A stretch of DNA of 64,000 bases from Mobula birostris (lineage: Eukaryota). Positions 774 to 37,167 of the stretch are shown one piece after another. A program made the translations under genes and the position numbers. The first letter of the stretch is position 1; each line of letters starts with the position of its first letter. Under the pieces are notes generated by a model. That model saw only the letters and a list, made by a program, of their open reading frames with translations. It was not told the origin of the DNA and did not search any database. Location of the stretch: NCBI RefSeq assembly GCF_030028105.1, contig NC_092384.1:17553629-17617628 (forward strand), in the 5' to 3' direction.

Positions 774-880
774 TCAGAAATTTTGCAAAGCACATTTGGA
801 TTGATAATTTGCAACAAATTGGTACATTATATTGCTATTAATTCTTTTGGATCTGGGTGAGTTTGTAACCTTGTCATATC
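774..880 (-). CDS. Gene 1 exon 4: cytoplasmic tail (G)YDKVTNSPRSKRINSNIMYQFVANYQSKCALQNF* with ITIM-consensus IMYQFV
   Basis: Acceptor tttatcaactctcttatag, phase 1, in frame with the preceding exon, ends at TGA 774-776. Confidence 0.6.
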
Positions 881-1082
881 CTATAAGAGAGTTGATAAAA
901 TTGTTCATGATTTGCCTCATGTGTGATGGGAAATCGAGCTTTCCAACTACAGCCACTCACATTAGTAACAATATTATTTCAACATCTTGCCTGCAATGCA
1001 AACATTACTTCACTTGCAAATAATTCCTTGTTTTTGAAGCACCTTCTCGATAATAATGCTAAAATCGAAGGGCATCACTAAC

Positions 1083-1199
1083 CTTGGACATTAGCTTTAA
1101 ATAGGAGATTGTCGATCGATAGGTCTGCACTGACAGCAGTTGTAAGGAGTACGATACAGCAAACAGAATCAGCGTTATTTCTCGTCCAATTGACGCTGC
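1083..1199 (-). CDS. Gene 1 exon 3: stalk/TM-like exon (G)SVNWTRNNADSVCCIVLLTTAVSADLSIDNLLFKANVQ
   Basis: Acceptor cacattttag, donor G|gttagt, 117 nt, phase 1-1, open, hydrophobic core; same length as the exon at 35737-35853. Confidence 0.65.
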
Positions 1200-1392
1200 C
1201 TAAAATGTGATTATTTTATTCTGTTCTTTTTAACTCTACAATTGGAGCTTGTAGAATGGGGTTTGCTTTGACGCGTGAAACAAATCCGCTCTCGCTGTTT
1301 GTTTTATCAAATAGTAACATTACATATTAATCTCATCATTAGCTTTAATTTAAATTGCACAAAAGCGAAAATCTCCTCGTAGCCGCACTAAC

Positions 1393-1698
1393 CGAACACA
1401 GTGAGCTTGGAGCCACTTCCATTCCAGAAAGATTGTTCCCGATACTTTGCTCCACAGTAGTAAATTCCGGAATCGGCGAATTTCACATCCAGAAGAACAA
1501 GCGTTCCTCTTGTCTTTTCGAGACTAAATCGTTTTCTGCTGTCACTTTCTAAAAATGCATTCTCGCCTTCCCTCCACCAAAGAAAGCTAACAGTATCTTT
1601 TGATATTTGAGTATTGCAGTGCAAGGTAACACTCGTCCCGCCCGGAACGTCCAAGTCCGTAGGGAATTGATATACTCTGAACGCAGGCACTTCGACTA
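1393..1698 (-). CDS. Gene 1 exon 2: V-set Ig domain with germline-joined J-like end (NKp30/CD28-family/NITR-like architecture)
   Basis: VTLHC...FLWW...DSGIYYC...WNGSGSKLTVF; acceptor tttatttttccggcag, donor G|gttagt, 306 nt, phase 1-1. Confidence 0.92.
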
Positions 1699-1898
1699 CT
1701 GCCGGAAAAATAAACAAGAGCATTAATAACAGCTACACACAGGGAATAAATAAGAACCTAAAGACCTGCTGGATGTTACTGGATAATGAAGAGACAAAGA
1801 CGACCGAATTGCTCAACCGCTGAAACTAGGTATGCAGCGCGAACCCAGGTTTAAGTTTTCTAAAATAGAATACTCAGTTGAGAAACGGAACATTTAAC

Positions 1899-1935
1899 TT
1901 AGCATACATAGACAGGTAATAGCCAGGAGCGCCAT
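1899..1935 (-). CDS. Gene 1 exon 1: signal peptide MALLAITCLCML
   Basis: ATG at 1935, hydrophobic peptide, phase-1 donor A|gttaaa (modest strength) joining the V exon in frame. Confidence 0.7.
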
Positions 1936-1968
1936 GTACGAAACCGTAAGTTTCTCTGACATATTACA

Positions 1969-2079
1969 GAAACCGAACCCAGCAATTTTGGGATACAAGT
2001 GATATTCTGAAGAGTTTGCGGAAGGAATAGAAATTCAAGAGTAAATATATGAACCGTGTAATCATGACGTAAGATGACG
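1969..2079 (-). promoter_or_regulatory. Candidate proximal promoter of gene 1 (ISRE-like and CRE/ATF-like motifs)
   Basis: GAAACCGAAC at 1969-1978, TGACGTAA at 2065-2072 and a TGACG half site at 2075, within 150 nt upstream of the ATG; short motifs only. Confidence 0.3.
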
Positions 2080-2599
2080 CCTCACCAAGACAGAAGCAGG
2101 TGTTTCAAAGATCGTTATACTGGGCAGACAGGGCAGTGAGAGCTCTTCACTTTTCAATTGTTAAAGGGCTATCTAGTGCTTTCAAAATTATGTTCGGATT
2201 TCGTGCACTATGCTGAGTTCAGGAATTATCCATTTCTTTATTTCGAACTAAATTCAAATCTGTGCTCTGCCAAGTAATTCCAAATATGGAAATCCGCATT
2301 GTAGTCATAAATATCTAATAACATTTGCGGTTTTGAATTGGATGGGTAAGATGGCACTAGCGACTAATGCTACTAACGGCGAATTCTTGCAAACGTCCAC
2401 GATTTTTTTCTTCTTCTTTTCCTTCTTTTAAAAAACATTTTAAATGTTATTAATGTGTGCGCGATTGGAGCCTGTAATATACAATTTGATAATGTGTCTT
2501 TGGGCCGTCTGAGGAATCTGGCGCTTTTGGTCTCTCCGACTGGATTCGGCGTGTTTGAGAACGTAGTATGCGGCTTACTAGTGGAAAGTGGATCCAATC

Positions 2600-3150: not shown

Positions 3151-4414
3151 ATGTTGAATCGGACAAAAATAGTAACAACCTTTCTTCACTATTTAGCTTC
3201 GTTGTGTTGTTGCGTTTCAATCATATACCATCGGTCAATTATCATCCCGCTGGTTGCAAACCGCAAACGCAAACCCCCACTTCACGTCCTCTACATTCTC
3301 TTGATTATATTTTAGCTCATCTCCCTCTCTTGTTCGAACTCTAGCTGCTCCTGCAAAGACATTCTTGACTTCCAAACTGAAATTTCATAGCTATGAATTC
3401 TATTGTTCTTACAATCACCATTGCAGTAAGATTTGCAGAAAACGGGGAGAGCAGGTGCGCTTTTACGGCAAGAAAGGCTTTAACGCTTTTTTTCTCCTAA
3501 TAATTTCCTTTAGGGTTTGTTTATAAAAGTCTGACTGATGAATTACTGTTTAATAGCTGGAAAAACAACCGAAAAGAAACTGATGAACGAGACTGCTTTG
3601 AACAGTCAGTACATTCCCTCGGACACCGTCATTCACACGTCTCTGATACAATGTGTGATTTTGGATTCTGAGCATTCATGAAACTGCTCAAAGGAAGCGA
3701 CATATGTTCCAGGAATAGGCCTGTTACTTCAGCAATTCTCATCTAATTCAAATGCTTGATCATTTCGAGGCTACATACTTTTTTATGAAATAAAAACATA
3801 ATACTAAATGTTACTTCATAAATTTATTCCAGCGATGGATTTGTCGTTGTTTTTTTTTTTGTACCAAGTTGCCCCCATAGTACTCAGGTTCCTCGCTTGC
3901 TGCTCTGGCTAGTTCGCACGCAGAACTCGGCGAGAAGCAACAGCAAGTGTTGTCTCTGATGGAAAACTATACCGGATGTCGGATGATAATCACCGAGAAG
4001 AGAGTGCTTAGAGTTGAAACTATAGGTTTATTCAGTTTAATGATTATGGTAACACAGAGATTTAGGAGGTATCACGAGAAAATTTATAAAGCGAGCATGG
4101 AGGACACCTCAACTGATAGAATGCAGTTCCGAGGCTCCATTTTTAAGTCCAATCAGCACGTGCGGAATTGGGGGTAATGCTGCAATTTCAAACATCTCTT
4201 AAATTTGCACAAAGTAAAAAGGAGACAGATGTAGAATCAATCTGAGCTAATGCTTAACCAGGTACAGACAAAACAGGCATCGGAATGAATCATTTGTCTG
4301 ACTCGGCAGCGCATACACGCTTACCCGTTTCTAATATGAGAATACAGAATATTCTTCAAATCATCGTGGTTGGCAGTGAAACTCTACTGAATTTCTCCCG
4401 AAAGCAGTAAAGAC

Positions 4415-4940
4415 TCTGATTACCATGCGGATCACGGCCCTCTTGTGAGTTATTATGCATCTGGAATTGCCACGATTCGGTGGGGACATTGCGCTGTTTT
4501 CATTGACACGTCATCGCCATCATCGAATTGCATCTCCTGCCCTCTCAGAAATGAAATTTTGTATGTGTATCGAGCGTGAGGTTGTTCACAGTAACACACA
4601 TTTAGTCCAGTGGATCCCACTGGATGTAATTAAGTTCGGGTTGTTGAGGAGATTGTCGAGGACAGGATGAATCAATGCTCAGCTTCCATGTGCTTCCTAC
4701 GTTCAGAGTCAATATTCTGATTTCCATGCGAATCACCACGTCATTTTGCCCAGTTATGCATTGGGAATTTCCACGAATCGTTTGGGATGTTATGCTACTT
4801 TCATGGACACATTGTCGCCATCATTGAATTCCATCTTATGTCCTCTCAGAATTGAACTCGATTGCAGAAACACATATTTTGTCCATTGGTACAGCTGGAT
4901 GTAATTGAGGTGGGGAAGTTGCGGAGGTTGGCGGGGTGAG
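4415..4940. repeat. Diverged tandem duplication, unit about 300 bp
   Basis: ctctgattaccatgcggatcac...cactggatgtaattaag recurs as ttctgatttccatgcgaatcac...agctggatgtaattgag. Confidence 0.75.
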
Positions 4941-5775
4941 GACACCGACTTAGTTAATTTTATCCTGCTGTTGATCTGGATAAAGTGTAAGGGGGAAAAA
5001 AACAACAACTAATAAGAGACAGTTCAATATTACCTTTCAAGTGATTTCAGATGCCTAACACAGAAATGCGACTGCGGTTTAAAACACTGCTTCCAGTAGG
5101 TAATTTTTCAGCCGAGACGCGGTGGGGGTGGGGAGAGTTGGGGGACTGGTCTTCATCTTCAGATATTCCTTTTTTCGACACATAAATACCAAAGGTGACA
5201 GGACCGTGATTGATTTCCCATGAACCACCCTCTGTTCACGATTGGTCGATTCTTCATGGCGTGTAGGAATTGAACAGTAACTTGGACAGATCACTAATCA
5301 TTTAAAAATAAGCTGACTGAAAAAAAAATTACCTGGTTTGAGCACTTGTGAGATTGTTGTGGTTGCTGTCAGGTGACAATTAATTAAGACGGCACATGCA
5401 TTATTAATTGTAAATGCTTTGGAAATAGTCCCTGTATCTCCTCAGTTTAGCTTGCAAATATATTGTTCATTGTTAACTGGCCTGGAAAAGCACAGGACAG
5501 TATAAGGAAAAATGTGTTTTTAAGTATTTAATTTATCAGTTTATTAATTCAAATGCTTGAATATTTCTGATAATGTCAGAAAAATCAAGAGGTTTCCAAT
5601 TGTTAAGCACAGCTCTGGTTATGTCTATGGGCTGACTGTGCATCTAGATTTGTAATTTATGAGACACTTCTGTCCACTTCACGACGAAATCCATTGTAAC
5701 GTCGCGCCTTTAAATGTCGTTACCTTCATTGGAAACATAATCCCAAATGTTCTCAACAATGTCTTCCTATAAGTG

Positions 5776-6180
5776 AACAGAACAGGAACAGGCCACCGAC
5801 CCACAATGCTGCGCCAAACCAGCTAAAAGGCAAATCAAAACACAGAAACACTAATCACATCCACCTGACCCATGTTAATCCTTACATCCATATGCCTATC
5901 CAGATGACTGTTGAAATCCTCTATTGTCCTTGCCGCTAGGACCATACCAGGCATCCACAACTCTCTAAGTAAAAGACTCGCCCCCCTTTGAACCTGCCCC
6001 CTGTCACTGTCAATGTGTGTCTTCTGGTATTAGACATTTCAACTCTGGGTAACAGATGCTCTCTGTACACTTTATCTATGCCTCTCATAACCTTGTAAAT
6101 CTCTATTAGATCTCCCTTCAGCCTGCAACGCGCCAAAGAAAACGACCCAAGTTTATCCTGCCTCTCGTGATAGCATAAAT
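5776..6180 (-). mobile_element. CR1 LINE 3' end
   Basis: LGSFSLARCRLKGDLIEIYKVMRGIDKV, the CR1 ORF2 C-terminus, plus 3' UTR. Confidence 0.9.
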
Positions 6181-6189
6181 ATTTCAACT

Positions 6190-7090
6190 GAATTTTCATT
6201 ATTATTTTGGTAAAATAATAGGGAGCTGTGTTGGAGTACTCTGACTGCAAAATTAAAGCTATTGTTTTATACTCTTGGGCCAGGTGACGGGAATATCCCA
6301 GAACGCTAGGCTCCATCGTCTGAGAGAGAAATCGTGATACCACTTCCTTGATAGTTTTCCCCTCTTCAGAGACCGTTCCTGACGGGCCTAGGATTTCCAG
6401 AGTTTTCTGCTTAATTCCGGCTTACAAACATCGGCAGTGCTATTTAACGTTATTACCCTTCTTTTCATGAACGATCTAACTAGATATAAGTTGAACACAT
6501 GAAGGCATGACCTTCCTTCCACTTTCATTCGTCTTTAAATGCATCGTGGAAATATTTTGGTTAAAAGACAGCTCTCGACATTGTCTCATCATGCTATTTG
6601 TCAACCTGCTCCTTACGCTATTAACACTGCTTTTAATATAAGATGGACGAGTACAGCGCAGGTTTATGACCTTCGCCAAATCAAACTAAATGCTTGCTAG
6701 CTGCGTATGATCTGCAACTCTCAAGTCACTGCACATTCGTGTCTCTATCCAAAAGCCTCTTTATTACAATATCTTCTTCTGATTTCATTTTCTTTAATGT
6801 ACAAGGAGTTTTGTTCCATTCCTGAGGGTAAGGTCACTCTAATTCCCGGCGCTCCTGCATTTCATGCGAATTGAACTCTTTGTAACAATTTGACACGTTT
6901 TTCTGTGCGTCCGTAGAAAAAAATCATTCCGGTTCAGTGAAGGGACAGGACTTTCAAATAATTGTCAAATGTATTTTTCCAACTCGTCTTAGTCTGGAAC
7001 ACTTTAAAGTCATCAAATAACAATCTAATACTCAGTGACCCGAAACGGATATTATTTCATGTAATTACGAAATCTGACATGATTTACACC
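6190..7090. repeat. Non-TE duplicated block, copy 1 (copy 2 at about 19330-20265)
   Basis: Collinear shared strings such as cattcgtctttaaatgcatcgtggaaatatt, ttaatataagatgga, gcggatattatttcatgtaat. Confidence 0.85.
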
Positions 7091-7139
7091 ACCATCACTT
7101 TGGAAAGATATTGTCTAATACACATAAAAGTTATACCGA

Positions 7140-9490
7140 TATCCTATATAACCATATAACTATATAACAATTACAGCACGGAAGCAGGCTATCTCGGCCC
7201 TTTTAGTCCGTGCCGAACTCCTACCTAATCCAACCGACCTGCACTCAGCCCAAAACCCTCTATTCCTTTCCTGGCCATAAAGCTGTCCAATCTAACGTTA
7301 AATGACAACATCGAACCTGCTTCAACCACTTCTGCTGAAGCTCGTTCCACACAACTACGACTCTCTGAGTAAGAAGTTTCCCCTCATGTTATTTCTAAAC
7401 TTTTACCCTTTAACTCTCAACTCATGTCCACTTGTTTGTATCTCCCCCACTCTCCACGTCAACTCTATCTATCCCCCTCATAATTTTAAATACCTCTATC
7501 AAGCCGCCCTCAACTTTCCGCATTCCAAAGAATAAAGACCCAACTTTTTCAACCTTTTTGTATAACTTAGATAATGAAACCCAGGTAACATTCTAGTAAA
7601 TCTTCTCTGTACTCTTTCTATTTTGTTGACATCTTTCCTATAATTCGGTGACCAAAACTGTACACAATACTCAAAATCTGGCCTCACCAATGCCTTGTAC
7701 AATATCAACCTTACATCCCAACTCCTATACTCAATGCTCTGATTTATAAAGGCCAACATATCAAAAGCTTTCTTCACCACCCTTTCCACATGAGATTCCA
7801 CCTTCAATGAATTATGCACCATTATTCCTAGATCCCACTGTTATAATGCATTCTTCAATGCCCTAGCATTTACCAGGTATGTCCTATTTTGATTAGTCCT
7901 ATCAAAATGTTTCACCTCACATTTATCAGCATTAAACTCCATTTGCCATCTTTCAGCCCACTCTTCTAACGGGCCTAAATCTCTATGCATGCTTTAAAAA
8001 CCTACTTCATTATTCACAACTCCACCCATCTAAGTATCATGTGCATACTTACTCATCCAATTTACCACCCCATCATCCAGATCATTAATGTATACGACAA
8101 ATAACATTAGACCCAGGACAGATCCCTGAGGCACCCCACTAGACACTGGCCACCACCACCACTCTCTGGCGTCACCCATCCAGCCACTGCTGAATCTATT
8201 TTACTACTTCAATGTTAATACCTAATGATTGAACCTTCCTAACCAGCCTTCCGTGTGGGAACTTGTCAAAGGCCTTACCGAAATCCATATAGACAACATC
8301 CACCGCTTTACCCTCGTCAACTTTCCCAGCATCCTCTTCAAAAAATTCAATAAGATTTGTCAAACATGACCTTCCACGCACAAATCCATGTTGACTGTTT
8401 CTAATCAGACCCCGTCTATCCAGATAATTATATATACCATCTCTAAGAATACTTTCCAACAATTTACCCACCACTAACGTCAAACTCACAGGCGGATAAT
8501 TGCCAGGTATACTCTTAGAACCCTTTTTAAACAATGGATCGACATGAGCAATACGCCAATTCTCCGGCACCATCCCCGTTTCTAATGATATTTGAAATAT
8601 TTCTGTCAGAGCCCCTGTTATTTCCACAATAACTTCCTTCAATTTCCCAGGGAATATCCTGTCCGGGCCCCGAGAATTATCCACGTTTATATTCCTTAAA
8701 AGCTCCAGTACTTCCTCTTCTTTAAAAATCATAATTTCCATAATTCCCTACCTGTTTCCCTTATCTAACACAATTCAATGTCCTTCTCCTCAGTGAATAC
8801 CGAAGAGAAGAATTTGTTCAGAATTTCCCTATCTCCTTTGGCTCAACACATAACTGTCCACTCTGATTCTCTAAGGGACCAATTTTACCCCTCACTATCC
8901 CTTTGCTAATAATATAATGGTAGAAACACTTGGGATTTATTTTCACCTTACTTTCCAAAGCAACCTCATATCTTCTTTTAGCTTTTAGCTTTTCTAATTT
9001 TTACATTCTTTATATTCCTCGAGAACCTCATTTACTCCATGCTGCCTATATTTATTGTAGATATCTCTCTTTTACCGAACCAATCTTCCAATATCCCTTG
9101 AAAATCGTGGCTCTCTCAAACTTTTAATCTTTCCTTTCAACCTAACAGGAACATAAATATTCTGTACTCTCAAAATTTCACCTTTAAATGACCTCCATTT
9201 CTTTATTACTTTCTTCCCATAAAACAAATTGTCCCAATCCACTCCTTTAAAATCCTTTCGCATCTCCTCACAGTTAGCCTTTCTCCAATCAAAAATCTCA
9301 ACCCTGTGTCCAGACCTATGCTTCTCCATAATTATATTCAAACTAATAGCATTGTGATCACTGGACCCGATGTGCTCCCCAACACAAACCTCCTTCACCT
9401 GACCAATCTCACTCCCTAACAGGAGATCCAACACTGCCCCTTCTCTGGTTGGTACCTCTATATATTGCTGCAAAAAAACTATCCTGAGGA
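7140..9490 (-). mobile_element. 5'-truncated CR1 LINE (end of EN, RT, 3' tail), disrupted
   Basis: ORFs 9072-9524, 8196-8741 (GNYPPVSL, QHGFVRGRSCLTNL, YMDFGKAFD) and 7499-7822 (LVRPDFEYCVQFWSP). Confidence 0.95.
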
Positions 9491-9499
9491 CTAACTTAT

Positions 9500-9685
9500 C
9501 CGGATGAGAGAAAAAAAATTGCACTACCTTACTTATTTTATATTTGTGATTTATAATTTAAATTTTTACTATTTACTATCGATTTGTAATCCAGAGAGCG
9601 CGAAGCGCAGAGTCAAATATCACTGTGATGATTGTACGCTCTAGTATAAATTGTTTGGCGACAATACAGTAAAGTAAAGTAAAAT
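9500..9685 (+). mobile_element. Short LINE/SINE 3' tail ending in (GTAAA)n
   Basis: gcgcagagtcaaatatcactgtgatgattgtacgctctagtataaattgtttggcgacaatacagtaaagtaaagtaaa. Confidence 0.5.
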
Positions 9686-10854
9686 TATTGTCCATTTTTA
9701 CATGTAGTTCCTTATTTAAGTAATCAGAAAGGAAAATGTGTTACCCCACTACTGAGATCAAGTTTACATTGCCTTTTAATTTGTAAAGTTATTTGTTCAT
9801 CATTCAATTTTCTCAGAGAATGAGTCACACATGAATAGCAACTATTTAGCTATTCTTAAAAACATTGTTTCGTGTAGTTATCTCCATACTGAACATAACA
9901 TAGAATCAGGAAGCATAGACGCCGCTGCACAGCTTCAGAAACGTTTAACTGACAGAAGCCGGCTTTCAAAAAAGTGTTATTTTTAACTTATTGTCCTTCT
10001 CTTAAACGCAAACGAGCAGTCTGCAAAATACGTGTTTCAGAGAGGCGCAATCATTGACCACAGATCTTCCATGATGTCACAAACAGATTCGCGCGTGCAG
10101 TTCTGTTCTCAGACGGTGTGTTAGTTCCCGTAAACGCAAATTATAATGACCTTCTTGGTAAACTGATACTTAATTAAAACCTGTATTCCGACCAGCTTTT
10201 TATAGAAAACTTGCACAAGCTCGCATGCAAACATTCGCATTTGCGAATTACGAACAGGAAGTTAGCATATATCTGCTTTGAGAGGATATGACAACTCATC
10301 GGAATGGAACATAGTAATGTAATCTGATTGCATTTCAAATGGGCAGTGGAAATAGAAAAGGAAAGTACCAAGGTACACACGGATACACTCATTTAAATAT
10401 TTTAATATGTTAACGTAAATGCTTCGATTCATGACTCACGGATGTGGGGTTTGAATTTGGTTCTCCAGAAACAGAATTCCTTGCACATATTCATAGCATT
10501 CCATATTCAATAGTCAGCAAGCTGAACCGTAACTCTATTTACTTATATATTTTGTTAGGCCACTTAATATTCATTGAATATGGAATTTTAATATCTGTTT
10601 CTTACTCTACCGTAATCCATAAAGCTCCTGATCTCCGCAGGTTTAAATGATCCGCGAGTTAAGTACGCCATGTGGAAGAACATTCATCTGCTGAGGCACA
10701 TGGCGTGAAACGATGATTGGGTTCCTAGATACAGATTATGGAGGGCGATAAACAGAAACACCACGGCTATCAGTGCTGGAAGCTAACAAATAAAGGAGAG
10801 GGATAATGGGAGCCATTAGAGGAGAAGTGAAAGCCAGATGAAACCTTACTCACT

Positions 10855-10970: not shown

Positions 10971-12169
10971 ACCAGGGGCAGATGGGGACGGGGAAGACTT
11001 TGTGTGAAATATATGTGCGGTGAATGGATGGAACTAGAAGGGGGCAATAACGAAAACGAGTACGTAGACACTGAAGTAAGAAAGTGTTAATAGCAATTAA
11101 CCTACAACAGCAAACACTGTGTAATTTCGTGGTTTGCAGAATATATAGGTGGAATATGAAGCTAGATATAAGCCACAAAATGCTAACCTTCATTGAAAAG
11201 GACTTGGTGTATGACCAGAAAGACATGTTGCAGCATGATACAATGAATTGGTTTAGTACTTACAAACTATTTTGAATATTTTCTTGGAAGGAGTACAGCC
11301 AAGTCTCTCTAAATTGGGTCAAGCAACATCTATGTAGCGAAGTGGAAGGTCAACTTTTCTGGACTAGACTCGATCAGGACTGAAAAGAAAGAGGAAAGTT
11401 AGTGTTAAAAGGTCATGAAAAAGCTGGAGCAATAGTTGGAGATTAATAGGTGGATCCAGGTGAGGAAGTGACAGCCAGTAAAAGGGGCGAGATTTAGTGT
11501 GATCCATGAGTCTGGTAGTCATAGATGGAAGCAACAAAGACTGAAGAAGTCAGACGACTTCAGCAGTGGAGAATTCCATTTTTTTACACGCGTGAACAAA
11601 CAACTCTAGATCATGTGATATATTGCAGGTGTATCCCGCATTTCACAAATTCCCCCGCGTCAGCGACCCACTTACAAATATTTGGAGTGTTATTTGCACG
11701 TATACTCCAAGATCAGGAGCTTCGAATGGTAGAATGCACAATATTGACTATTCTAAGCAGTTTACAGAAGACCATAAAACTTCGTTTTTTTTCAGCTCTC
11801 TCCTAAATCGCTATGATCGTCATTTTTTTCTTCATTCGCTCCTCTGCATACTCACAAGTAACAGGGAAGCTTAACAGGACGAAGATCCTCCCCCTCGATC
11901 ATGGCCGATCCAATCACATTCTCAGGCGACACTTTCTTTTTCATCTGATGCTCATATCGGTATTGTGAAATTCCTCCATTACTTTGTATGTATTGCTTCG
12001 ATTTCCAGCATCTGCAGATTTTCTCTTGTTCAGATCGGTATTAGTCAGCTTTACCTTGCTTTCGAAAAATCTCCAGCGAATTATTGTTATGAGTTTGGTC
12101 TTGTAAGTTAACAGGTTGGATCAATGAAGAAAATTATTTCTTTAAATTATTACTTACGATACGTTCAAA

Positions 12170-14680
12170 AAACTAGGTAATGATCAATAACTAGAAGATT
12201 ATGAGACTAGCAGGAAGGAGTTTAGGAATCAAATTAGGAGAGGCAGAAGGGGCCATGAGAAAGCCTTGGCAAGCAGGGTTAAAGAAAATCCCAAGGTATT
12301 CTACAAGTATGTGAAGAGCAAGAGGATAAGACGTCAGAGAATAGAACTAAACAAGTGTGACAATGGAAAAGTGTGTATGGAACTGAAGGAGAAAGCAAAG
12401 GTAGTTAATGAATACTTTGCTTCGGAAAAGTATTATGACGATTGTGGGGATGACTTCAGCGGATTGAAAGGCTTGAGCATATAGACATTAAGAAAAAGGA
12501 TATGCTGGAGTTTTTGGAAAGTCTCAAGTCTCCGGAACTGGACGAGATGCACTCCAGGATACTGTGGGAGGCGAGGGAAGAGATTGATGAGCTCTGACAA
12601 TGACCTTTGGATCATCAGTCGGGACGGGAGAGGGTCCAGAGGATTGGAGGGTTGTAGATGTTGTTCCATTATTCAAGAAAGGCAGTAGACCAGTCAATCT
12701 TACTTCTGTGGTTGGTAAATTGATGGAAAAGATTCTGAGAAGCAGGATTTATGGACATCTGGAGAGGCATAATATGATTAGCAAAAGTCAACATGGCTTT
12801 CTCAAAGGCATGTCGTGCCTTACGAGCCTGGTTTAATTTTTTGAAAGATGTGACTAAACACGTTGATGAAGGCAGAGTAGTAGATGTAGCGTACATGGAT
12901 TTCAGCAATGCATTTTATAAGGTATCCCATGCGAGGCTTATTGAGAAAGTGAGGAGGCATGGGATCCAAGGGACCTTGCTTTGCCGAAACAGAACTGGCT
13001 TGCCCACAAAAGGCAGAGTAGTTGTAGACAGGTCATACTCTGCATGGAGGCCCGTGACTACTGGTGTGCCTCAGGGATCTGTTCTGCGACCCTGTCTCTT
13101 CGTAATTTTTATAAATCACCTGGATGAGGAAGTGGAGGGACGGGTTCAAAAAATTGCTGATGATACAAAGGTCGGGGGTGTTGTCGATAGTGTGGAGGGC
13201 TATCAGAGGTTACAGCAGGACATCGATATGGTAAAAAAAAAATTGGGCTAAGAAGTTCCAGATAGAGTTCAAAACAGATAAGTCTGAGGAGATTCATTTT
13301 GGAAGGTCAAATATGATGGCAGAATAAAGTATTAATGTCAGGCTCTTGGCAGTGTGGGGGATCAGTGCAATCCTGGGGTGCGAGTCTTTTGGACACTCAA
13401 ACGTGCTCCGCAGGTTGACTCTGTTCACAAGAAAGCGTATGGTGCATTCACTGTCATAAACCATGGAATTGAGTTTAAGAGCCGAAAGGTAATGTTACAA
13501 CTTTATTGAACCCTTGTCAGACCCCACTTGGAGTACTGTGCTCTGTACTGGTCATCTCACTAGAGGAAGGATGTGGAAACTATAGAAAGCGTGCCGAGGA
13601 GATTTTAAAAAAGGTTGCCTAGATTGGGGAGCATGCCTTATGAGAATACATTGAGTAAACTCGTCCTTTTCTCCTTAAAACGGCGGAGAATGAGAGGTGA
13701 CCTGATAGAGGCGTATAAGATGATGAGAGGGATTGATCGTGTGGATAGTCAGAGGCTTTTTCCTAGGCCTAAAATGGCTTGAGAGGGCACAGTTTTAAGT
13801 GTCTGGACGTAGGTACAGAGGAGATGTCAGCGTTTTTTTTTTACGTGTAACGCTCAGTTATATTTTCTCGTATATGTCTAGGGGAAATCCCACCAGGCAC
13901 CTGCCTGAACGCTTCCTACTGAGTCGGTTGCTGACCCCTACCACCCGAATCAATCCCAAACATCAATCATCAGCCAGCACACACAGTACGTTTTGCACAG
14001 TACATTTTATACATATCACTAAGTCCATGAAACTAGTATACATTCGATACAGAAAAGGAAGCAATGGGGAAAAAAAGGCGCCAGACTTATCAAAGTCTAA
14101 GTTCTTCGTGCACAACAGTTGGAGCTCAATAAATTCCTGAGGACCACCCGGATCCTGTCGACTCACGGCTTGGGACCACCCAGAGTGATCTACCGGAGCC
14201 TTTCACACCGTCCGCCGTCCTTTCCGTCTCTCCTCTGACTCCTCGCCAAAAACTCCGTTCCCAGTCATATGAGACAGCATTATCACCCGAATAAAACGAT
14301 GACATTAATACCCATTGGCTAATAGCACCCTGCTATCTGTATTCACCCAAGAAAATGTCTAGCTAGAGATTTTCTCAGCATTTAACATAACAAAGAAGCA
14401 TTCCCAAGTATAACATAACAAAGAAGCCATTTTAAACTTAACACAAAAAAACCCATACATACGCAGTGAGTGGAGCGGTGAGTGCTTGGAATGCGGTGTC
14501 GGCGACAGTGGTGGAGGGGGATACCATAGGGTCTTTTAAGAGACTCCTGGATAGGTACATGGAGCTTCGAAAAATAGAGGGCTATTGGTAACCCCCGGAA
14601 ATTTCTAAAGTAAGTACATGTTCGGCCCAGCATTGTGGGCCCAAGGGCCTGTATCGTGCTGTAGGATTTCTATGTTTCCA
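12170..14680 (+). mobile_element. 5'-truncated CR1 LINE interrupted by a solo LTR
   Basis: SRVKENPKVFYKYV, QHGF, YMDFSNAF, GVPQGSVL, ADDTKVGG; 3' end resumes at 14460. Confidence 0.95.
13846..14459. mobile_element. Solo LTR, 614 bp
   Basis: TGTA...TACA termini flanked by 4-bp direct repeat tacg (13842-13845, 14460-14463); removal restores the CR1 sequence. Confidence 0.8.
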
Positions 14681-14689
14681 TGTTTCTAT

Positions 14690-17567: not shown

Positions 17568-17568
17568 C

Positions 17569-17599
<31 letters not shown>

Positions 17600-17614
17600 G
17601 TTATTATTGTTATA
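17569..17614. repeat. (TTA)n microsatellite
   Basis: Directly visible. Confidence 0.98.
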
Positions 17615-25400: not shown

Positions 25401-25949
25401 GACGTCTGAAAACGATGATGATAACGACATTTGTCTCTCTCGAATGTCAATGGATTTACGGCACTGGAGTGACATCTCGAGGACACGTCTGGGTGGAAGG
25501 TATGCAGATCTTCACATCGTCACGATCTTCCACTTGGTCTCACCGGGCTCACTGGGCTCACAGTTGTAGTACAAAGAAAATCGAAGGAATATGTTTAGCA
25601 CCAGCTTGGCTGCAAGAGATGCCAGAAGGATGCTTAGTGACGTCCAGCCCCCTTAGATGGTCCACTGTGGATTTTCTCCCTGTGTTTCATTCCGTAGGAT
25701 TTGTCCCCACCGTGGCTGCCCACAAGGCTGTGGATCTATTTTTCCCTATCTGGGGATCTGGTTCTCGAGCACCAGGACATGTCCACGCGCCGATTGGCCT
25801 GCGTGCAGGGCAAGACCTCCTCCCCATCCTCTGTAGATTAGCATGCGTCCGAAATGCTTTCGGTTTCCATTGTCATTAGCGAGGTGGCACCAAATGAGGC
25901 TTTCTGTAGAGAGGCTATGCTTTGGTAGTGGTAGACTTGCACATTCAGG

Positions 25950-28900
25950 TCCACTTAAGTAATAACATCACCCCTTCCCTTAATCCCACCCGCTCTGTCC
26001 CGTCTAAACAAAGGACCTCGGAATATTAAACCGTTGGTCCTGCAACTCTCGGCACAAAGTCGCGCCAGTGGCTACAATAGCACAATTCCGGGCGTTGGTC
26101 CATGCCCTGAGTTCACCGAACTTTCCCACTGTACTTCTTTTATTGACATATATGCTGATCAGTAGTTAGTCACGCCATGCTCAACCTTGTGGTTCCGGAC
26201 TTTATCTGAGGACTTAATGACATCTGCCTTCAGAACCTCTCCACGGACTGTTGCAACACAATCGTTCCTATCCCCCTAAATTCTTGCTGCAATCTCACCG
26301 CACAGCACGAGCAAACCTCCGCGCTGGGACATTATCGCCTTCCCTCCTACACGAGCTCCTCAGCCAGGTACTAAACTGCATAATCTTTCTAATCTGGCCT
26401 CAATACCACGTGACACAGGCAGCAATCCTGAGATTACAAACCCGGAGATCCAGCACTTTAATTTAGCTCCTGACTCTCTGAACCCACCTTGTGGAACGTT
26501 GTCACTCACCCTGCTTATGTCAGCGGTAGCTACATGAACGACACCTCTGGATGTTCACGCTCACATTTAAGAAAACAAAGGACTCAATCCGAAATGTCCT
26601 GGATCCTAGCACCCGGGAGGCAACATCATCGGAAATCTCGTTGTCGTCCACAGAAGCTCCTTTCTGTTCTCCTAAAGAACCAACCCATACACAGCTCGGC
26701 TCTTCCCCGCTTCCCTCCCCCTCATTCCTTCTGAGTCGCAGAACTTGGCTCAATGCCAAAGACCGGACTTGTGTGTGTCATGGTCCAGTCCGTGAAATCC
26801 GCATTCCGATTCACGGTCCGGTTCATCGATCCTTATTCCTGGTTTTCCTATTTCCCTTATTCCATTGGGTGCTTTAATTGAGGCACCTGATTCTCATTTT
26901 GGGCTGGCACATAATTACCTCTGCAAACCAAGGATTCCCGGCTGGACTGTTCCCTCCCCTTCCCCATCCAAATCCCCGACAGTTACCTCGGCAATTTACT
27001 TCGGCAGTTTACCTCGGCAATTTATTTTGGCAGTTTACCTCGGCGGTTAACCACGGCAGTTAACCACAGCAGTCACCTCGGCAAGTATCCTCAGCAGTCA
27101 TCCCGGCACTGGGTCCAAGAAAGGATCCTTGCCCTGCGTCGAGAAAGGGTCCCGGCCCTGCGCTCCAAGAAGGGGTCCCGGCTCCGTACCCAAGGGCCTA
27201 ACCAAATCGGGTCCAAGAACCGAGTCAGACCTAGTCCAAAAGCCTTGTCCTGTGCTGGAGTTCCTCTTCCTGTTCTGGACTTCCCTCGTTCTGTCCAAGA
27301 GACTCTCGTCCAGTTTGGTAGTCCCTAGTCCAAGCCAGGTCCAAGAACCTCGTCTAGCCCAAGCCACGTCCTTGTACCTCGTCTTGTCCAAGCCACGTCC
27401 AAGTACCTCGTCTAGTCCAAGCCTAGTCCAAGAACCTCGTCCTGTCCAAGTCCCGGCTTTGTGTTCTCGTCCTATCAATGTGCCTAGTCCTGTGCAGGAG
27501 TTCCACGTCCAGTTCTGTAGCCACGTCTTGTCCTCGCCTAGATCCGGGGTCCGAGCCCGGATCAAGACCCAGGTTTCGAGTCCCTGTCCAGTCTCTGGCT
27601 CAGAGTCCTAGCCCAGGCTCCTAGTTCCAAGTTCCTTGTCCTGGTCCCACTTTCCTAGTCTTAGTCTTAGCCCAGGCCCGCTGTCCTTGTCTCGTCCAGA
27701 GCCAGTGCCCATATCGAGCGTCGTTTCCTCCTGACTCCCTTTGCTTTCCTGATAAACCTTGTCCTGTTCCTAGTACTTCAGTGTCTGCGTCTTCCATCTG
27801 GGTCCGTTCCCAACGCCCCCTTATGACAGAACAGCCCAGTCATACATCGACCCAGCAACACAGACACTGTCGTTTAACTCTCGCCACCCTGGGTTCCCTC
27901 CTGTTGAATAGCCCGCAACGTGCCCGAGTCATCCTTAGACCTGGAGAGCCTGTTCGGTCGCCAGGAGGTTCCCGTATAGGGGGTGGGGGGTTACTATGAT
28001 GGTCCGGTCCGTGAAATCCGCTTTCCGATTCACGATCCGGTAAATCGATCCTTATTCCTGGTTTTCCTGATTTCCCTTGTTCCATTGGCTGCCTTAATTG
28101 AGGCACCTGATTCTCGTTTTGGGCTGGCACATAAATACTTCTGCAAACCAAGGATTTCCGGCTGGACGGTTCCCTTCCTCTCCCCATTCGAATTCCAGAC
28201 AGTTAGCTCGGCAGTTAACCTCTGCAGTTTTTTGGCAAGTATCCTCAGCAGTCATCCAGGCCCTGCGTCCAGGCAAGGGTCCAGGCCCTGCGTCCTAGAG
28301 AGGGTCCCGGCCCTGTTAAAGCATTCCGGCCCTGCGTCCTAGGAGTCCTGGCCGTGCGTCCTAGGAGAGTCCCGGCTCTGCGCTCCAAGAAGGACTCCCA
28401 GTTCCGTACCCAAGGTCCTAACCAAGCCGAGTCCAAGAACCGAGCAAACCTAGTCCAAGAGCCACGTACTATGCTGGAGTTCCTCTTCCTGTGTTGGAGT
28501 GCCTCGTCCTGGGCTGGAGATCCTCGTCCTGCGCTGGTGTTCGTGGTCCTGCGCTGGAGGTCCTCGCTCTGCGCTGGAGTTCCTCGCCTAGCCCAGGAAT
28601 ACGTCGCCTAGCCCAGGAGTACGTCGCCCAGCCCAGGAGTACCTCGCCCAGCCCGGTGCTGGAGATTCCTCGTCCTGTGCTGGAGTTCCCTTGTCCTGTG
28701 CTGGAGTTCCCTTGTCCTGCGGTGGAGTTCCCTTGTCCTGTCCAAGAGTCTGTCATCCAGTCCAGCAGTCTCACGTCCAGTCCAGGAGTCCCTAGTACAA
28801 ACCATGTGCAAGAACCTCGTCTAGTCCAAGCTACGTCCAAGAACCTCGTTAGTCTAAGCCTAGTCCAAGAACCTCGTCCTGTCCAAGTCAAGGCTTTGTG

Positions 28901-31380: not shown

Positions 31381-31396
31381 TGGCGCCCTCTCCAGG
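31381..31396 (-). promoter_or_regulatory. CTCF-like motif CCTGGAGAGGGCGCCA
   Basis: Resembles the CCASYAGRKGGCRS consensus; in non-TE, locally CpG-rich sequence. Confidence 0.35.
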
Positions 31397-32156
31397 CCGT
31401 CGCAGTGACAGAATGCACTTGATTAGGATGATTTAGAGGAATTTACAAGTTTACAGATATTTAAAATCCCTGAACCCGTTATCGTTTATGTTTACTTTCT
31501 GTTTGTATTTATTTACTTTCTTCGCCTCACTGTACTGATTTTTTTTCCAAGTAAATGTAGTACACACGTCCTTTTGCATCAGTATTAGAGAACACTTTTT
31601 TTTTACACAGGGCATTCACCAATGCGAGCAAATAATGATACCGGCTTGAAACGACGTTGAGCTGAGCTGAAACCAAATACATTCTGAAAAGCACTTTAGA
31701 AAATATCACCAGCACTTCGCACGCTTGAGAAATTGTTCTACGCTTGTGGCTTTGCCCTTCTGAGAAATGAAAAACAGCTATTTGTGTTTTTAATGAGTAG
31801 ATGAAAAACTGAATAAGATAGACAACAGTACAAAGATGCTGTCAACTCAAAACATGATACAACCGTGCATTTTTACTTGAAAGTAAATACCAAAACAATA
31901 TTTAAAAGTGCAGAAAATCGACGAGATTTGAGATGTGAAGTGACGTAGGAGAAGGAAGTGAATAAATGATTCTCAAAGGGAAATCTATCCCAGCCAACGT
32001 ATTCCGCTGAACAGGTCGAAGCGGTCCACTCTTGCTTCCAAGCTTGTACGTTTCTATTATTTTCGCAAATTTATCTGTATTACCGAAACTCCTTCAGAGA
32101 ATAGATTGTTGTTTGCACAATGAGACAGAGGATTTACTTCACTGTTGGAGTTCTCT

Positions 32157-32330
32157 GTACCTTCTCTCCACCTTCTTGAGTCCCGCACCTTATCCACCAA
32201 CCACGCTGACCTGATGAGCAACAATAATATATTGTTATACCAGGATGCTCACCCTGTTGTGTCACACATACATCTACCAGAACCAGAATTAAGCCGTCAA
32301 TAAACTGACTATTGCCAAACAAATGCTGGG
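32157..32330 (-). pseudogene. Possible degenerate V-exon 3' half
   Basis: GLILVLVDVCVTQQGEHPGITIYYCC followed by G-x-G-like sequence and a donor ag|gtacag; motif-level only. Confidence 0.3.
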
Positions 32331-32879
32331 CATATTTCAGACTTATTTTGATCCATTCGATAATTGGGCAGTTATTAGTCGCTGAGGAGCTCTGTCAAAA
32401 GCATCATATTCTTCGAGAGTACACATGTAGACACTTGATTCCTATTTAAATCAACTTTCCAACGTCCACGTTTCTCAGTCAAATGTTATGATTAGACTAA
32501 ACTTGATTTCCATCAATGTGACCATGTGGGTATTTTCTCTGCTTCAATGTGGGCTGGAATAGGCACACAGTTTGCGATGCATTTATTTTGCCTTTTGGGT
32601 GTCCTGGAATTTCTGTTATTACCATGTGATAGTGCTGTTGTATTTTACAGCTAATTTTGAGCAGCAAGCCGTGAATGTATATGAAACAAAAGAGTACTGA
32701 GTTTTCTTTTTAATCATACATTTATGATTAAAATTAAGGCACTTATGTGTTATGGCGAGAATACAGATTTTTTTTTCACATCATCAAATTGATATTTCCC
32801 TTGGTTGAAAGTTGATATCAGTGAGCAAGAATAACTGTTCAGTTGGCGTTTTTCACCCTGCAAAGTTTCTCGCGCTGGT

Positions 32880-34740
32880 GGTGACTATAAAAGCTTTTAT
32901 AGATATGTGAAAAGAAGAAGATTGGTTAAGACAAAGGTAGGTCCCCTACAGACAGAAACAGGTGAATTGATTATGGGGAGCAAGGACATGGCAGACCAAT
33001 TGGCTAACTACTTTGGTTCTGTATTCACTAAGGAGGACATAAATAATCTTCTGGAAATAGTAGGGCTCAGAGGGTCCAGTGAGATGGAGAAACTGAGGGA
33101 AATACATTTTAGTAGGGAAGTGGTGTTAGGTAAATTGAAGGGATTAAAGGCAGATAAATCCCCAGGGCCAGATAGTCTGCATCCCAGAGTGCTTAAAGAA
33201 GTAACCCAAGAAATAGTGGATGCATTACTGATAATTTTTCAAAACTCTTTAGATTCTGGACTAATTCCTGTGGATTGGAGGTGGCTAATGTAACCCCACG
33301 TTTTTTTAAAAAAAGGAGGGAGAGAGAAACTGGGGAACTATAGACCGGTTAGCATAACATCTGTGGTGGGGAAAATGCTAGAGTCAGTTATCAAAGATGT
33401 GATAACAGCACATTTGGAAAGCGGTGAAATCATCGGACATAGTCAGCATGGATTTGTGAAAGGAAAATCATGTCTGACGAATCTCATAGAATTTTTTGAG
33501 GATGTAACTAGTAGAGTGGATAAGGGAGAATCAGTGGATGTGGTATATTTGGATTTTCAAAAGGCTTTTGACAAGGTCCCACACAGGAGATTAGTGTGCC
33601 AACTTAAAGCACACGGTATTGGGAGTAAGGTATTGATGTGGATAGAGAATTGGTTGGCAGACAGGAAGCAAAGAGTTGGAATAAACGGGACCTTTTCAGA
33701 ATTGCAGGCAGTGACTATTGGGGCCACAAGGTTCAGTGCTGGGACCCCAGTTGTTTACAATATATATTAATGACTTAGATGACAGAATTAAATGCAGCAT
33801 CTCCAAGTTTGCGGATGACACGAAGCTGGGCGGCAGTGTTAGCTGTGAGGAGGATGATAAGAGGATGCAGGGTGACTTCGATAGGTTAAGTGAGTGGGCA
33901 AATTCATGGCAGATGCAATTTAATGTGGATAAATGTGAGGTTATCCACTTTGGTGGCAAAAATAGGAAAACAGGTTATTATTTGAATAGAGACCGATTAG
34001 GAAAAGGGGAGGTGCAACGAGACCTGGGTGTCATTATACACCAGTCATTGAAAGTGGGCATGCAGGTACAGCAGGCGGTGAAAAAGCCGAATGGTATGCT
34101 GGCATTTATAGCAAGAAGATTCGAGTACAGGAGCAATGAGTTACTACTGCAGTTGTACAAGGCCTTGGTGAGACCACACCTGGAGTATTGTGTGCAGTTT
34201 TGGTCCCCTAATCTGAGGAAAAACATCATTTGCATAGAGGGAGTACAAAGAACGTTCACCAGATTGATTCCTGGGATGGCAGGACTTTCATATGAGGAAT
34301 GACTGGATCGACTAGGCTTATAGTCGTTGGAATTTAGAAGATTGAGGGGAGACCTTATTGAAACGTATAAAATCCTAAAGGGATCGGACAGGCTAGACGC
34401 AGGAAGATTGTTCCCGATGTTGGGGAAGTCCAGAACGAGGGGTCACAGTTTGAGGATAAAGGGGATGCCTTTTAGGACCAAGATGAGGAAAAACTCTTCA
34501 CACAGAGAGTGGTGAATGTGTGGAATTCTCTGCCACAGGAAACAGTTAAGGCCAGTTCATTGGCTATATTTAAGAGGGAGTTAGATATTGCCCTTGTGGC
34601 TAAAGGGATCAGGGGGCATGGAGGGAAGGCTGGTACAGGGTTCTGAGTTGGATGATCAGCCATGATCGTACTGAATGGCAGTGCAGGCTCGAAGAGCCGA
34701 ATGGCCTACTCCTGCACCTATTTACTATGTTTCTATGAAT
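32880..34740 (+). mobile_element. 5'-truncated CR1 LINE (RT, 3' UTR, ctatg tail)
   Basis: DKSPGPDSLHPRVLKE, QHGFVKGKSCLTNL, YLDFQKAFDKV, PQGSVLGP, KFADDTKLGG. Confidence 0.97.
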
Positions 34741-34961
34741 CTCTGATTTATTTTTTCATCCTCTGAGGACTGTGGATGGAATATCTTGGGGCGCGGGGTG
34801 CCTAAGGAAAAGTAGGTTTATATCATGGAATGGCTGGGGTCTGTTTAATGATACAGCAGAGGAGATTATGGTTGAGCATATCAGATATTATCCTCTTGAA
34901 TGACCGGGCAGTGGAGAGAGGCGAAATGGTATATTCTCAAACTTATTCTCAAGTTCCTTAC

Positions 34962-34967
34962 TTTATT
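34962..34967 (-). terminator. Candidate poly(A) signal for gene 2
   Basis: AATAAA on the minus strand about 175 nt after the stop at 35142. Confidence 0.35.
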
Positions 34968-35141
34968 TTTTCTAGTGATAATCGCCTCCAATAAATAAAA
35001 GGCGTAATTGATCCCTTATCTTCCTAACTTATACATGTGATATCGATGAACAATCTTTGTCTGGATGCAAGAAATGAAACGAAGCAATACCTCGCGCCTG
35101 CACTCATTGATAGTCTACAGCTCTAAACTGCAGTTAGATTC

Positions 35142-35299
35142 TCAGCTTCGCTGTTTCTTTGATGTATTTACATCTGCGTACAATGAATTTTGGTTTTGAT
35201 GTTTGGATGCTGAGTTGTTCTTGGAATCGGGAAGCTTCAGAGCAGCGTAAGTCAGTTTGTCATCTCTATTTGATTTAGTCTGTGAAAATATTTCATAAT
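35142..35299 (-). CDS. Gene 2 terminal exon: (D)YEIFSQTKSNRDDKLTYAALKLPDSKNNSASKHQNQNSLYADVNTSKKQRS*, two ITIM-consensus motifs
   Basis: LTYAAL and SLYADV fit (S/I/V/L)xYxx(I/V/L); acceptor gattaactgcag gives phase 1, in frame with the TM-like exon. Confidence 0.75.
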
Positions 35300-35736
35300 C
35301 TGCAGTTAATCGAGAATCCATTGAGTTGAACAAACTGCAAAATAATTAGTGATGCATTCATAAGTTATCAATTTTATGTTTCTACCGTTTTACACAAAAT
35401 TTATGTCAATTTTTTTTCAAAATTTCTCGTCTTAATTGATATGGTGTTTCAAGTCCAAGAGTCAGTGTTCTCCTACTGAACAATGAGCCGTTCTTTCCTT
35501 ACTTGAAATGAAGTGTAACAAAATCGTTTTGGTTTCTGTTCTTAACAACGTCACATTGTCCCCTCCACTCTGACTTCTAAGCACTTCCATCTTATTGAGC
35601 GCAAAAGATTCTGAACATGCTGAAATCCAGAGAAACACAGAAAATCCTGGAAGAACTCTGCCAATCAGGTAGATCTAAAGTGTCGACGTTTAAAGCCGAG
35701 ATCCAACATGATGACTTCATAAAAGCACCATCTTAC

Positions 35737-35853
35737 CTTGCTCCTGGAAGTAGCTGAAACTCGCAGGCACCGTGAGGGAGACATGTGATACCAGAAAGGT
35801 GTAAATATATTTTCGCCAAGTAGACTGCATGATTTCCAATGAACTAAAGGCTT
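35737..35853 (-). CDS. Gene 2 stalk/TM-like exon (E)AFSSLEIMQSTWRKYIYTFLVSHVSLTVPASFSYFQEQ
   Basis: Acceptor gtattttaag, strong donor G|gtaaga, 117 nt phase 1-1 as in gene 1. Confidence 0.6.
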
Positions 35854-36191
35854 CTTAAAATACATCAACGCTCCGGTTTGTCACACTTTCTATTTCAGCG
35901 CGAACTTGCTTGTTATTTCTTTGCCAAACGATTTCTAATTTCTCCGGGTAGAAGGCAACCATTTTACAAAGGAACTTTCGAGGAGACGAAAACCCTCCAA
36001 CAGGAACAATGAGCTTGAGTAAAAACAAAGTTATACTAGGTGTTCACGATTCATTTCATTGCGGATAGATTCCTTTCTCTCCGCGCCAACTAACATGACA
36101 CTCAACTATCAATTTAGTTACCCGCCAGTATTAATCAGTATTTAATAAAGTCGTTCAATTTCACGTTTGCTTTATTGTTCCTCAAGCATAC

Positions 36192-36365
36192 CCACACACC
36201 GCTAAGCGAAACATTGTTCTTCTGGGACGAAGATGCAAAGGCAGTAGATATAGTCACACACAGCACATATAGTTACCATCCAGCGCAGGCCGTCACAAAA
36301 TAAGCAGAGCAAATACTTGGGAGACAGAATAAAGGAAGAGTTCAGAGAATATACCTCGACGGCGA
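36192..36365 (-). pseudogene. Possible decayed V exon of gene 2
   Basis: RGIFS...ALLIL*RPALDGNYMCCV*...TMFRLAVC then phase-1 donor G|gtatgc, about 340 nt upstream of the TM exon; two stops. Confidence 0.35.
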
Positions 36366-37167
36366 AGCTAAGAGGTCCGAAGTGAGGAAGACATTGTCTT
36401 TTGAATGGGACTTGAGCGTTATTGAACAGCTGGGTTTGCGGCGGGCGTTAGCTTTGGAAACCTGACTACTTTTGGATTTTTCATTTCGTATCAAGACTGA
36501 GCTACAAATCCAAAAATATCACAGATTTCTATAGTACGAATGCACATGGAGTTGAATATTCTGGCAGCTCAACTGCTTAGGGAGTGTTTATGGACTTGAG
36601 GTTGAGCTTTCACGTCATAAACATTCAGTAATAGAGCTTTCCCTAGAATGTGAACCATTCCTGCAATAGTTCTCCCGTGCTGAATATGGCAAATCATCTC
36701 CTCCGTGAACCAACCAGGAACGCAAACGCAAGTTGCTATTAAACGCATTGATTATATAGTTCTATGCTTTCAAAAGACTGAAGTTCTGCAGCATAATGTT
36801 CGACACTGACTTAACACTGCGAAAGGAACGTTTGTGGAAACAATGCCTTGCAGAGGGTCAAGCAGGAACTGAACGAATTCAATTTCACCATACATAGAGT
36901 TTGCTAAAACGTGAGCCCTATTTTAATGTTTTGTAAACACGGACTCCTTCCGCTACAGCTATGGTCGGTGTCTAGCAGGGGAGATCAAATAGTTAGATCG
37001 CTTTATCTGTTTACCACAGTAGTTAGGGTTTCGCTTTGCCTACAATATGTATCCGGAGCTCACCATTGCCGGACCTCACTTCCCAAACATATACCGACGT
37101 CAACGTTCCTGGCCTTCTCAAATTCTAGGTGAAGGACAATCCTGAAGTGAAAATACGCGAAGGGCTT

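Follow-up and report, generated by a model that had tools for sequence, protein, structure and literature searches.

A 64,000-nucleotide stretch of the genome of the giant manta ray Mobula birostris (the window; contig C19:17,553,629-17,617,628) very probably belongs to a tandem array, evolving by birth and death, of receptor genes of the immunoglobulin (Ig) type that do not rearrange, in which a working unit has seven exons and joins a V(J) domain to a C1 domain. The window holds only the leader and V exons of an intact unit, gene A, on the minus strand at the window start, and a dead unit, gene B, on the same strand 34 kb upstream (35.1-37.2 kb), with retroelement insertions between the two. 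It was placed by tblastn of the V-exon translation on the species' own 4.0-Gb assembly. Both loci had been singled out in a first-pass annotation, as locus 1 (gene A) and locus 2 (gene B); true Ig-receptor sequence is present at both, but the gene models drawn there were wrong.

The family exon plan and gene A

The exon plan of the family was read from N+1, the nearest paralog unit after the window (sequence L039+L031), to which the RefSeq model XP_072135231.1 (P0152) aligns exon by exon at 99-100% in tblastn, directly past the window end. It comprises a leader, V(J), C1, a transmembrane (TM) exon, two short cytoplasmic exons (cyt1 and cyt2) and a tail exon with tyrosines of the ITIM/ITSM type (ITIM, immunoreceptor tyrosine-based inhibitory motif). 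The family's true TM exon measures 99 nucleotides (nt), cyt1 of N+1 encodes GNTNSLEGCQNEDP, cyt2 carries TAYASL and VIYSQ, and the tail carries LTYATL and FYADV. Pfam calls both a V-set and a C1-set domain in the full-length RefSeq models, and V is separated from TM by a single C1 exon in gene A, in N+1 and in the RefSeq models alike. Profile hidden Markov models (HMMs) of the family were built for V from 26 exons, for C1 from 11 exons and for TM plus tail from 6 proteins.

Gene A had been drawn as a compact gene with V, TM and an ITIM; what the window contains is instead the 5' part of a gene of seven exons, on the V-C1-TM-tail plan, which runs out of the window at its start. Its V exon is recognised by Pfam as V-set (2.6e-10 over 1391-1732) and by the family V HMM (2.8e-42), has a J-like G-x-G-x-x-L-x-V strand (GSGSKLTVF) and is 92% identical to XP_062923618.1 (P0001) of M. 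hypostoma. The C1, TM, cyt1, cyt2 and tail exons follow in the correct order and on the same strand 1.2-7.8 kb before the window, within the 10 kb preceding its start (L037). Joined, the exons form a coding sequence of 1,041 nt, all of whose splice junctions have AG/GT, with an open frame of 346 amino acids (aa); it shares 91% identity with P0152 and 94% with the M. hypostoma model. The V-C1 intron is 91% identical in nt to its N+1 counterpart, and gene A keeps the motifs TAYASL, VIYSQT and TLYADV. Gene A thus shows every defining feature of the family: a single-exon V(J), one C1, a 99-nt TM exon with cyt exons and a tyrosine tail, and a place in the array described below. The start of the TM segment reads LILERAAGG in gene A and N+1, the uncharged LIFTCAVGG in N-1, the nearest paralog unit before the window, and the uncharged FILACALGG in older paralogs.

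Splicing was followed in Logan contigs of four small coded public runs (spliced contigs in X1 and X3); no run is recorded as RNA, and the contigs carry no depth or strand information. Over L043, a 5.4-kb stretch from the gene A leader to TM (window coordinate = L043 position - 3129), these contigs show three joints: leader to V, V to C1 and C1 to TM. The first runs from L043 4825 to 5037, reaching window position 1908. The second, present in both X1 and X3, skips 2,598 b from window position 1393/1394 to L037:8794 with GT..AG on the gene strand, and the RefSeq family models likewise join V straight to C1. Over 650 positions there are 12 differences between the X1 contig and gene A, and an X3 piece of the C1 exon differs by ~5%. 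Since it is only a guess that these coded runs are RNA, the contigs speak for how the subfamily is spliced and not strictly for the expression of gene A.

Gene A could be silent or dying despite its open frame, with the contigs derived from N-1, from N+1 or from the ortholog of another species. The identity of the X1 contigs to gene A is 98-99% and not 100%, one ITIM tyrosine of the tail has been lost (LTNATL), and the database searches retrieved no RefSeq protein identical to the gene A product, although the family is already predicted there. We consider this alternative unlikely, since all seven exons are open with AG/GT at each junction, the X1 contig lies nearer to gene A in V (differences of ~1.3%) than do N-1 (4%) or N+1 (6%), and the X3 piece of the TM exon matches gene A at 99 of 99 positions.

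Gene B and the matching open frames of the two loci

Judged by its lesions, gene B is a pseudogene remnant. Nucleotide alignment against four paralog C1 exons revealed a 17-nt frameshifting deletion between 36011 and 36010, just past the acceptor, a TAC to TAA change at 35857-35855 and the replacement of the canonical second Cys by Phe at 35797-35795. The exon is still recognised by Pfam as C1-set (4.6e-4, 35858-36043) and, in two pieces, by the family C1 HMM (4.2e-21 and 7.6e-15). It is nearest to an older subfamily typified by XP_072135230.1 (P0153; 81.5% aa identity, and 79-83% nt identity when 1.1 kb of upstream intron is included). The tail exon is 76% identical to the P0153 tail and is matched by the family HMM at 1.5e-19; the DNA around it (34827-35442) has 73% nt identity to the corresponding regions of gene A and N+1. 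The C1 and tail regions lie 6.3 kb apart in N+1 (unit positions 3986 to 10264) versus about 100-160 b in gene B, where the matching blocks stop at 35442 and resume at 35532-35606. No TM or cyt match was found anywhere in the window, and no V match for gene B, with tblastn and the family HMMs. Upstream, homology to five paralog loci ends in blastn at 37174, at a LINE-rich block (LINE, long interspersed nuclear element). A short colinear match at 41088-41167 was not accepted as gene B sequence; it adjoins a repeated 1.6-kb element.

Could gene B be alive, its open tail or C1 piece being used by a neighbouring gene or yielding a truncated product? In the tail exon the acceptor does survive, the frame is open and neither tyrosine motif has been lost. 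We nevertheless hold this to be very unlikely: the window offers gene B no V, leader, TM, cyt1 or cyt2, its C1 combines a frameshift, a stop and the loss of a Cys, and N+1, the nearest upstream unit on the same strand, has a tail of its own 32 kb away. Several other tail matches of the array are likewise without partner exons nearby.

The first-pass annotation had linked the two loci through TM-like exons of identical length (117 nt, phase 1-1), each followed by a terminal exon with a tyrosine motif. Open 117-nt stretches in phase 1 with AG/GT flanks are indeed present on the minus strand at 1083-1199 and 35737-35853, and are followed by open frames with tyrosine motifs at 774-880 (IMYQFV) and 35142-35279 (LTYAAL, SLYADV). 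Neither stretch encodes a TM segment and the two are non-homologous: 1083-1199 belongs to the V-C1 intron of gene A, while 35737-35853 is the 3' half of the gene B C1 exon and begins right after its in-frame TAA. The hydropathy of 1083-1199 is 1.62 against 2.16 for the true TM, its value being lowered by two Asp residues. The equal length is at chance level. On the minus strand of the window there are 45 such 117-nt stretches (AG..GT-flanked and open in phase 1), 129 ITIM-like motifs and 100 short terminal open reading frames (ORFs) that start at an AG and contain such a motif, and with windows and motifs this common the shared 117 nt and tyrosine tail carry no weight.

Since the true C1, TM and tail exons of gene A precede the window start, both 1083-1199 and 774-880 fall within an intron. 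Comparison with paralogs agrees with this placement. In six older paralogs the AG acceptor of 1083-1199 is gone, its length has grown by 8 to 10 nt and stops occur in five of the six; 774-880 has 44-56 gap columns in older paralogs, with a stop at the Tyr codon in one (L041), and is kept in two young copies only, with a 9-nt indel. In N-1 and N+1, 1083-1199 is 97% conserved, no better than the flanking intron (92-97%), and the two intronic ORFs together show 91-97% nt identity, with no excess over that background. None of the joints in the spliced contigs over L043 uses either stretch. As exons, the two were ruled out by their decay in paralogs, by RefSeq splicing and by the contig joints. The model in which locus 1 is an intact, compact gene of four exons (leader, V(J), 117-nt TM exon and ITIM tail) wholly inside 774-1962, sharing a TM and tail module with locus 2, is therefore scarcely credible even though its intronic ORFs have AG/GT or AG/stop flanks and are open in gene A, N-1 and N+1 alike, because spliced contigs and RefSeq models link V directly to a C1 outside the window, six older paralogs lack the acceptor and have indels that are not multiples of three and, in most, stops, conservation among young copies equals that of the flanking intron, the 117-nt stretch of locus 2 is unrelated C1 sequence, and such windows and motifs are frequent by chance.

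The array on C19 and the DNA between the loci

In own-genome tblastn, the V, C1 and tail exons each gave 14 matches in the interval 16.72-17.74 Mb of C19. Sorted by position, these exon-wise matches (V, C1 and tail pieces) give an array of ~1 Mb with 11 V+C1 pairs, mostly on the minus strand, two of them in an inverted segment, and most with a tail exon 6-20 kb downstream. A further ~8 members are partial remnants: a V only, a V with a TAA and half a C1, a V fragment, a C1 fragment, partnerless tail matches and gene B. The proposal that Ig-type receptor genes form a tandem family here, largely on a single strand, with members both intact and decayed and an extent well beyond the window, is thus supported, paralogs of V, C1 and tail being plentiful on the same scaffold.

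The closest neighbouring units are found 53 kb before the window, with a V 86% identical in aa, and 13 kb after it (V 83%). Gene A shares 96-98% nt identity with N-1 and 90-97% with N+1, in exons and introns alike, and by this identity of 90-98% through introns the three are young copies. Among them, the ratio of nonsynonymous to synonymous substitution rates (dN/dS) is 1.2-2.8 for the V exon and 0.27-1.18 for the C1 exon, on just 1-6 synonymous differences. The V exon hints at diversifying selection, in counts too small for a test. The V exons of the young copies (window 1393-1698 against L031 and L032) show 10-14 nonsynonymous and 1-3 synonymous differences.

Further groups of V and C1 matches, 30-44% identical to those of gene A, are found on C19 at 3.1-4.06 Mb and 12.6-13.07 Mb; with these two groups outside 16.72-17.74 Mb, C19 holds at least three clusters of V-C1 genes. 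The unplaced contigs C2919 (V 25573-25914, C1 22084-22395, tail 12056-12241) and C4229 (7796-7981) carry a unit with scores nearly equal to those of the unit at C19:16.90-16.91 Mb; the unplaced unit is probably a haplotig or assembly duplicate and not an additional locus.

Relatives are present in rays, sharks and the chimaera Callorhinchus. A protein search with the V exon returned, among short proteins, chondrichthyan predictions only, and no teleost protein was among the 20 short matches whose names were checked. RefSeq names for members are inconsistent and include SIRP-alpha-like, NCR3LG1-like, Ig lambda-1 light chain-like, tapasin-related and uncharacterized. The model P0001 (285 aa) reads through the cyt1 donor into the intron, ending …NEDPVGEVTRLV… (compared with L031:3926-4099), and is either mis-predicted or an isoform without a tail. 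The tails of some relatives are short and devoid of tyrosine motifs, as expected of paired receptor families. A full-text literature search, with subscription journals outside its coverage, turned up papers on UrIg/UrIg2 and on the major histocompatibility complex (MHC) and no description of the family.

Between the two loci the picture is different from that first drawn. The several V-like and TM-like remnants proposed there proved absent: the family HMMs, run with hmmsearch --max (filters off) on 3,111 six-frame pieces of at least 12 aa from the window, found no further V, C1, TM or tail remnant, the only extra match (15779-15898, plus strand, E=0.042) lying inside a retroelement, and tblastn found no further pieces with the window's own V, C1 and tail at E<=10 or with P0152 and P0153 at E<=1. 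The stretch 32137-32394 on the minus strand, examined as V-like for its ITIYYCCSS, has no Pfam match and was rejected. The description of the loci as buried in transposable elements holds, since retroelement ORFs (Pfam RVT_1, RT_RNaseH_2, Exo_endo_phos and Exo_endo_phos_2) occur throughout the window. The coordinates of all features are collected in Table 1.

Table 1. Features of the window and of the gene A exons that precede it
Feature	Position	Strand	Remarks
Gene A exon 1, leader (MSEKLTVSYM...)	1908-1962	-	ATG at 1962; GT donor 1907-1906; P0152 tblastn, RNA joint
Gene A exon 2, germline-joined V(J)	1393-1698	-	306 nt; phase 1-1; AG/GT flanks; ends ...GSGSKLTVF
Gene A V-to-C1 intron, first 1.39 kb	1-1392	-	continues to C1 exon start 1,205 b before window (L037:8794)
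Gene A C1 exon	L037:8501-8794, outside window	-	294 nt; phase 1-1
Gene A TM exon	L037:7146-7244, outside window	-	99 nt
Gene A tail exon	L037:2203-2334, 7.7 kb before window start	-	
First-pass 117-nt TM-like exon, locus 1	1083-1199	-	open stretch in V-C1 intron, not exon
First-pass tyrosine-motif terminal exon, locus 1 (IMYQFV)	774-880	-	intronic open frame
Gene B, 3' part of V-C1 intron	36014-37174	-	blastn 79-83% to paralogs L033, L035, L041; 68-70% to gene A, N+1
Gene B, broken C1-set exon	35737-36013	-	277 nt vs 294; AG acceptor and GT donor retained
Gene B, junction of ~6 kb deletion (TM, cyt1, cyt2 gone)	35443-35531	-	
Gene B, tail exon	35142-35279	-	45 codons and stop, open; LTYAAL, SLYADV; acceptor cag retained
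LINE reverse transcriptase fragment (example of debris)	8199-8747	-	Pfam
Other retroelement debris	12778-13248, 15082-15447, 46952-47446, 49990-50340, 56013-56531, 60165-61604	+	Pfam

A repeated element of ~1.6-1.8 kb lies at 32913-34738, with an inverted copy at 39474-41085. The former shares 91% identity with a copy at L034:3038-4864, which sits in the V-C1 intron of a paralog at C19:17.43 Mb, and related copies occur in the V-C1 intron of several other paralogs. GC-rich minisatellites at 27325-28740 and 52354-53257 (periods of 20-52 nt) yield long spurious open frames on both strands.

Likeness to known receptors and meaning for cartilaginous fish

The closest relatives of gene A are the chondrichthyan V(J)-C1 receptors predicted in RefSeq, which match it in exon plan, domains and tail motifs (91-94% identity to the closest models); pieces of gene B are 76-82% identical to such models, but gene B is a pseudogene. 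When a full-length model was compared by sequence with PDB entries, the matches were to Ig heavy chains, to domains 1 and 2 of SIRP-alpha and to UrIg2 (1.7e-14). SIRP-alpha is the best match apart from Ig and T-cell receptor (TCR) chains (2wng_A, E 4.2e-16, colinear over residues 27-206, that is V and C1; 4i2x_E, 5.5e-13), and similar scores are reached by many Ig and TCR chains. Compared by itself, the V exon aligns over its whole length with TCR-alpha V and CD79b, and the C1 exon finds constant domains of the Ig heavy chain (IgH), with UrIg2 C1 (PDB 9dmx) the second-best PDB match at 2e-13. An AlphaFold model of the ectodomain (mean confidence, pLDDT, 82.7) found as best PDB folds the V-C chains of antibodies and TCRs, mainly light chains (E~1e-15); the TM-scores of this search are low (~0.4) owing to the V-C elbow angle, and it was used for chain type only. 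B7-H6 (NCR3LG1), after which RefSeq names some members, is an NKp30 ligand with a V-C ectodomain of the B7 type; the 60 best sequence matches in the PDB and the 50 best matches by fold include SIRP, Ig and TCR chains but no B7-H6 chain, and no direct comparison with it was run.

The manta family resembles mammalian SIRP (SIRP-alpha/SHPS-1; PDB 2wng, 4i2x) in having a V domain with a J-like strand, a C1 domain, a single TM segment and an ITIM-type tail, and the tail tyrosine motifs YADV and YAAL are common to both. SIRP is also a paired-receptor multigene family, although the copy number in the manta is much higher. The SIRP ectodomain has two C1 domains and the manta family one, and identity is low. 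Going by architecture and motifs, the family may work most like a SIRP with one C domain.

An analogy to NITR, LILR/KIR and CD300 clusters had also been drawn. It is apt for the cluster dynamics, since all of these form tandem arrays of Ig-type genes with fast turnover, inhibitory tails and pseudogenes, but not for domain make-up. NITRs, a teleost family, lack a C1, their V domain being accompanied in some cases by an I-type domain, and their V-J is also germline-joined; KIR and LILR have C2/I-type domains and no V, and CD300 has a single V. All of them are without the V(J)-C1 ectodomain, with one C1-set domain, of the manta genes, which consequently belong to none of these families. Another comparison is with UrIg and UrIg2, non-rearranging VJ-C genes of elasmobranchs that are described as paralogues with multiple C domains, UrIg being reported as linked to the MHC and UrIg2 to the Ig/TCR complex (PMC12227049). 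They share with the manta family a single-exon VJ, a split leader and a C1-type constant domain; the manta family differs in its one C domain, its ITIM tails and its dozens of copies (at least 14 V in the local array). MHC linkage of the C19 array was rejected: matches to class I and class II alpha exons cluster on C6 at 174.9-180.2 Mb, with two class I matches on the unplaced C4593, and no class I or II exon match was found on C19.

We propose that the proteins would be type I membrane receptors with a light-chain-like ectodomain, that phosphorylated tail tyrosines may, on the pattern of SIRP-alpha, attract SH2 phosphatases and dampen the activation of the cell, and that the V domains may diverge fast between young copies. 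Several points weigh against this interpretation of the locus. The inhibitory function is predicted from motifs only, and in gene A signalling may differ on two counts, the tail tyrosine missing from LTNATL (LTYATL in N+1) and the Glu-Arg carried by its TM segment. The contigs, 1-2% off gene A, may stem from an allele, a close paralog or a sister species, and a rare isoform using the intronic ORFs may still be compatible with them. Finally, the cluster inventory was compiled from exon-wise tblastn matches and not from curated unit models.

For annotation, two tempting wrong gene models have been corrected, and the lesions of a pseudogene and the exons of an intact gene spanning the window edge have been located exactly. 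No older lineage than the cartilaginous fish has antibodies and T-cell receptors, yet to our knowledge little of their repertoire of innate receptors, natural killer (NK)-type or myeloid, has been charted. Germline-joined V(J)-C1 genes with inhibitory-type tails, in an array of megabase scale that gains and loses copies, are a candidate for such a repertoire. We suggest tentatively, as a possibility that we do not favour strongly, that the chondrichthyan V(J)-C1-ITIM genes constitute an undescribed, fast-evolving receptor system in the role of KIR/LILR/NITR in cartilaginous fish, a suggestion prompted by the presence of at least three clusters on one chromosome, the V dN/dS above 1 among young copies, the coexistence of ITIM-bearing and ITIM-less members and the frequent pseudogenes. 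The C1 domain is nearest to IgH and UrIg2 constant domains and, if this affinity is true, the family would be another non-rearranging relative of the antigen-receptor precursor. The array also bears on how antigen-receptor-like V-C1 genes diversified in the absence of rearrangement.

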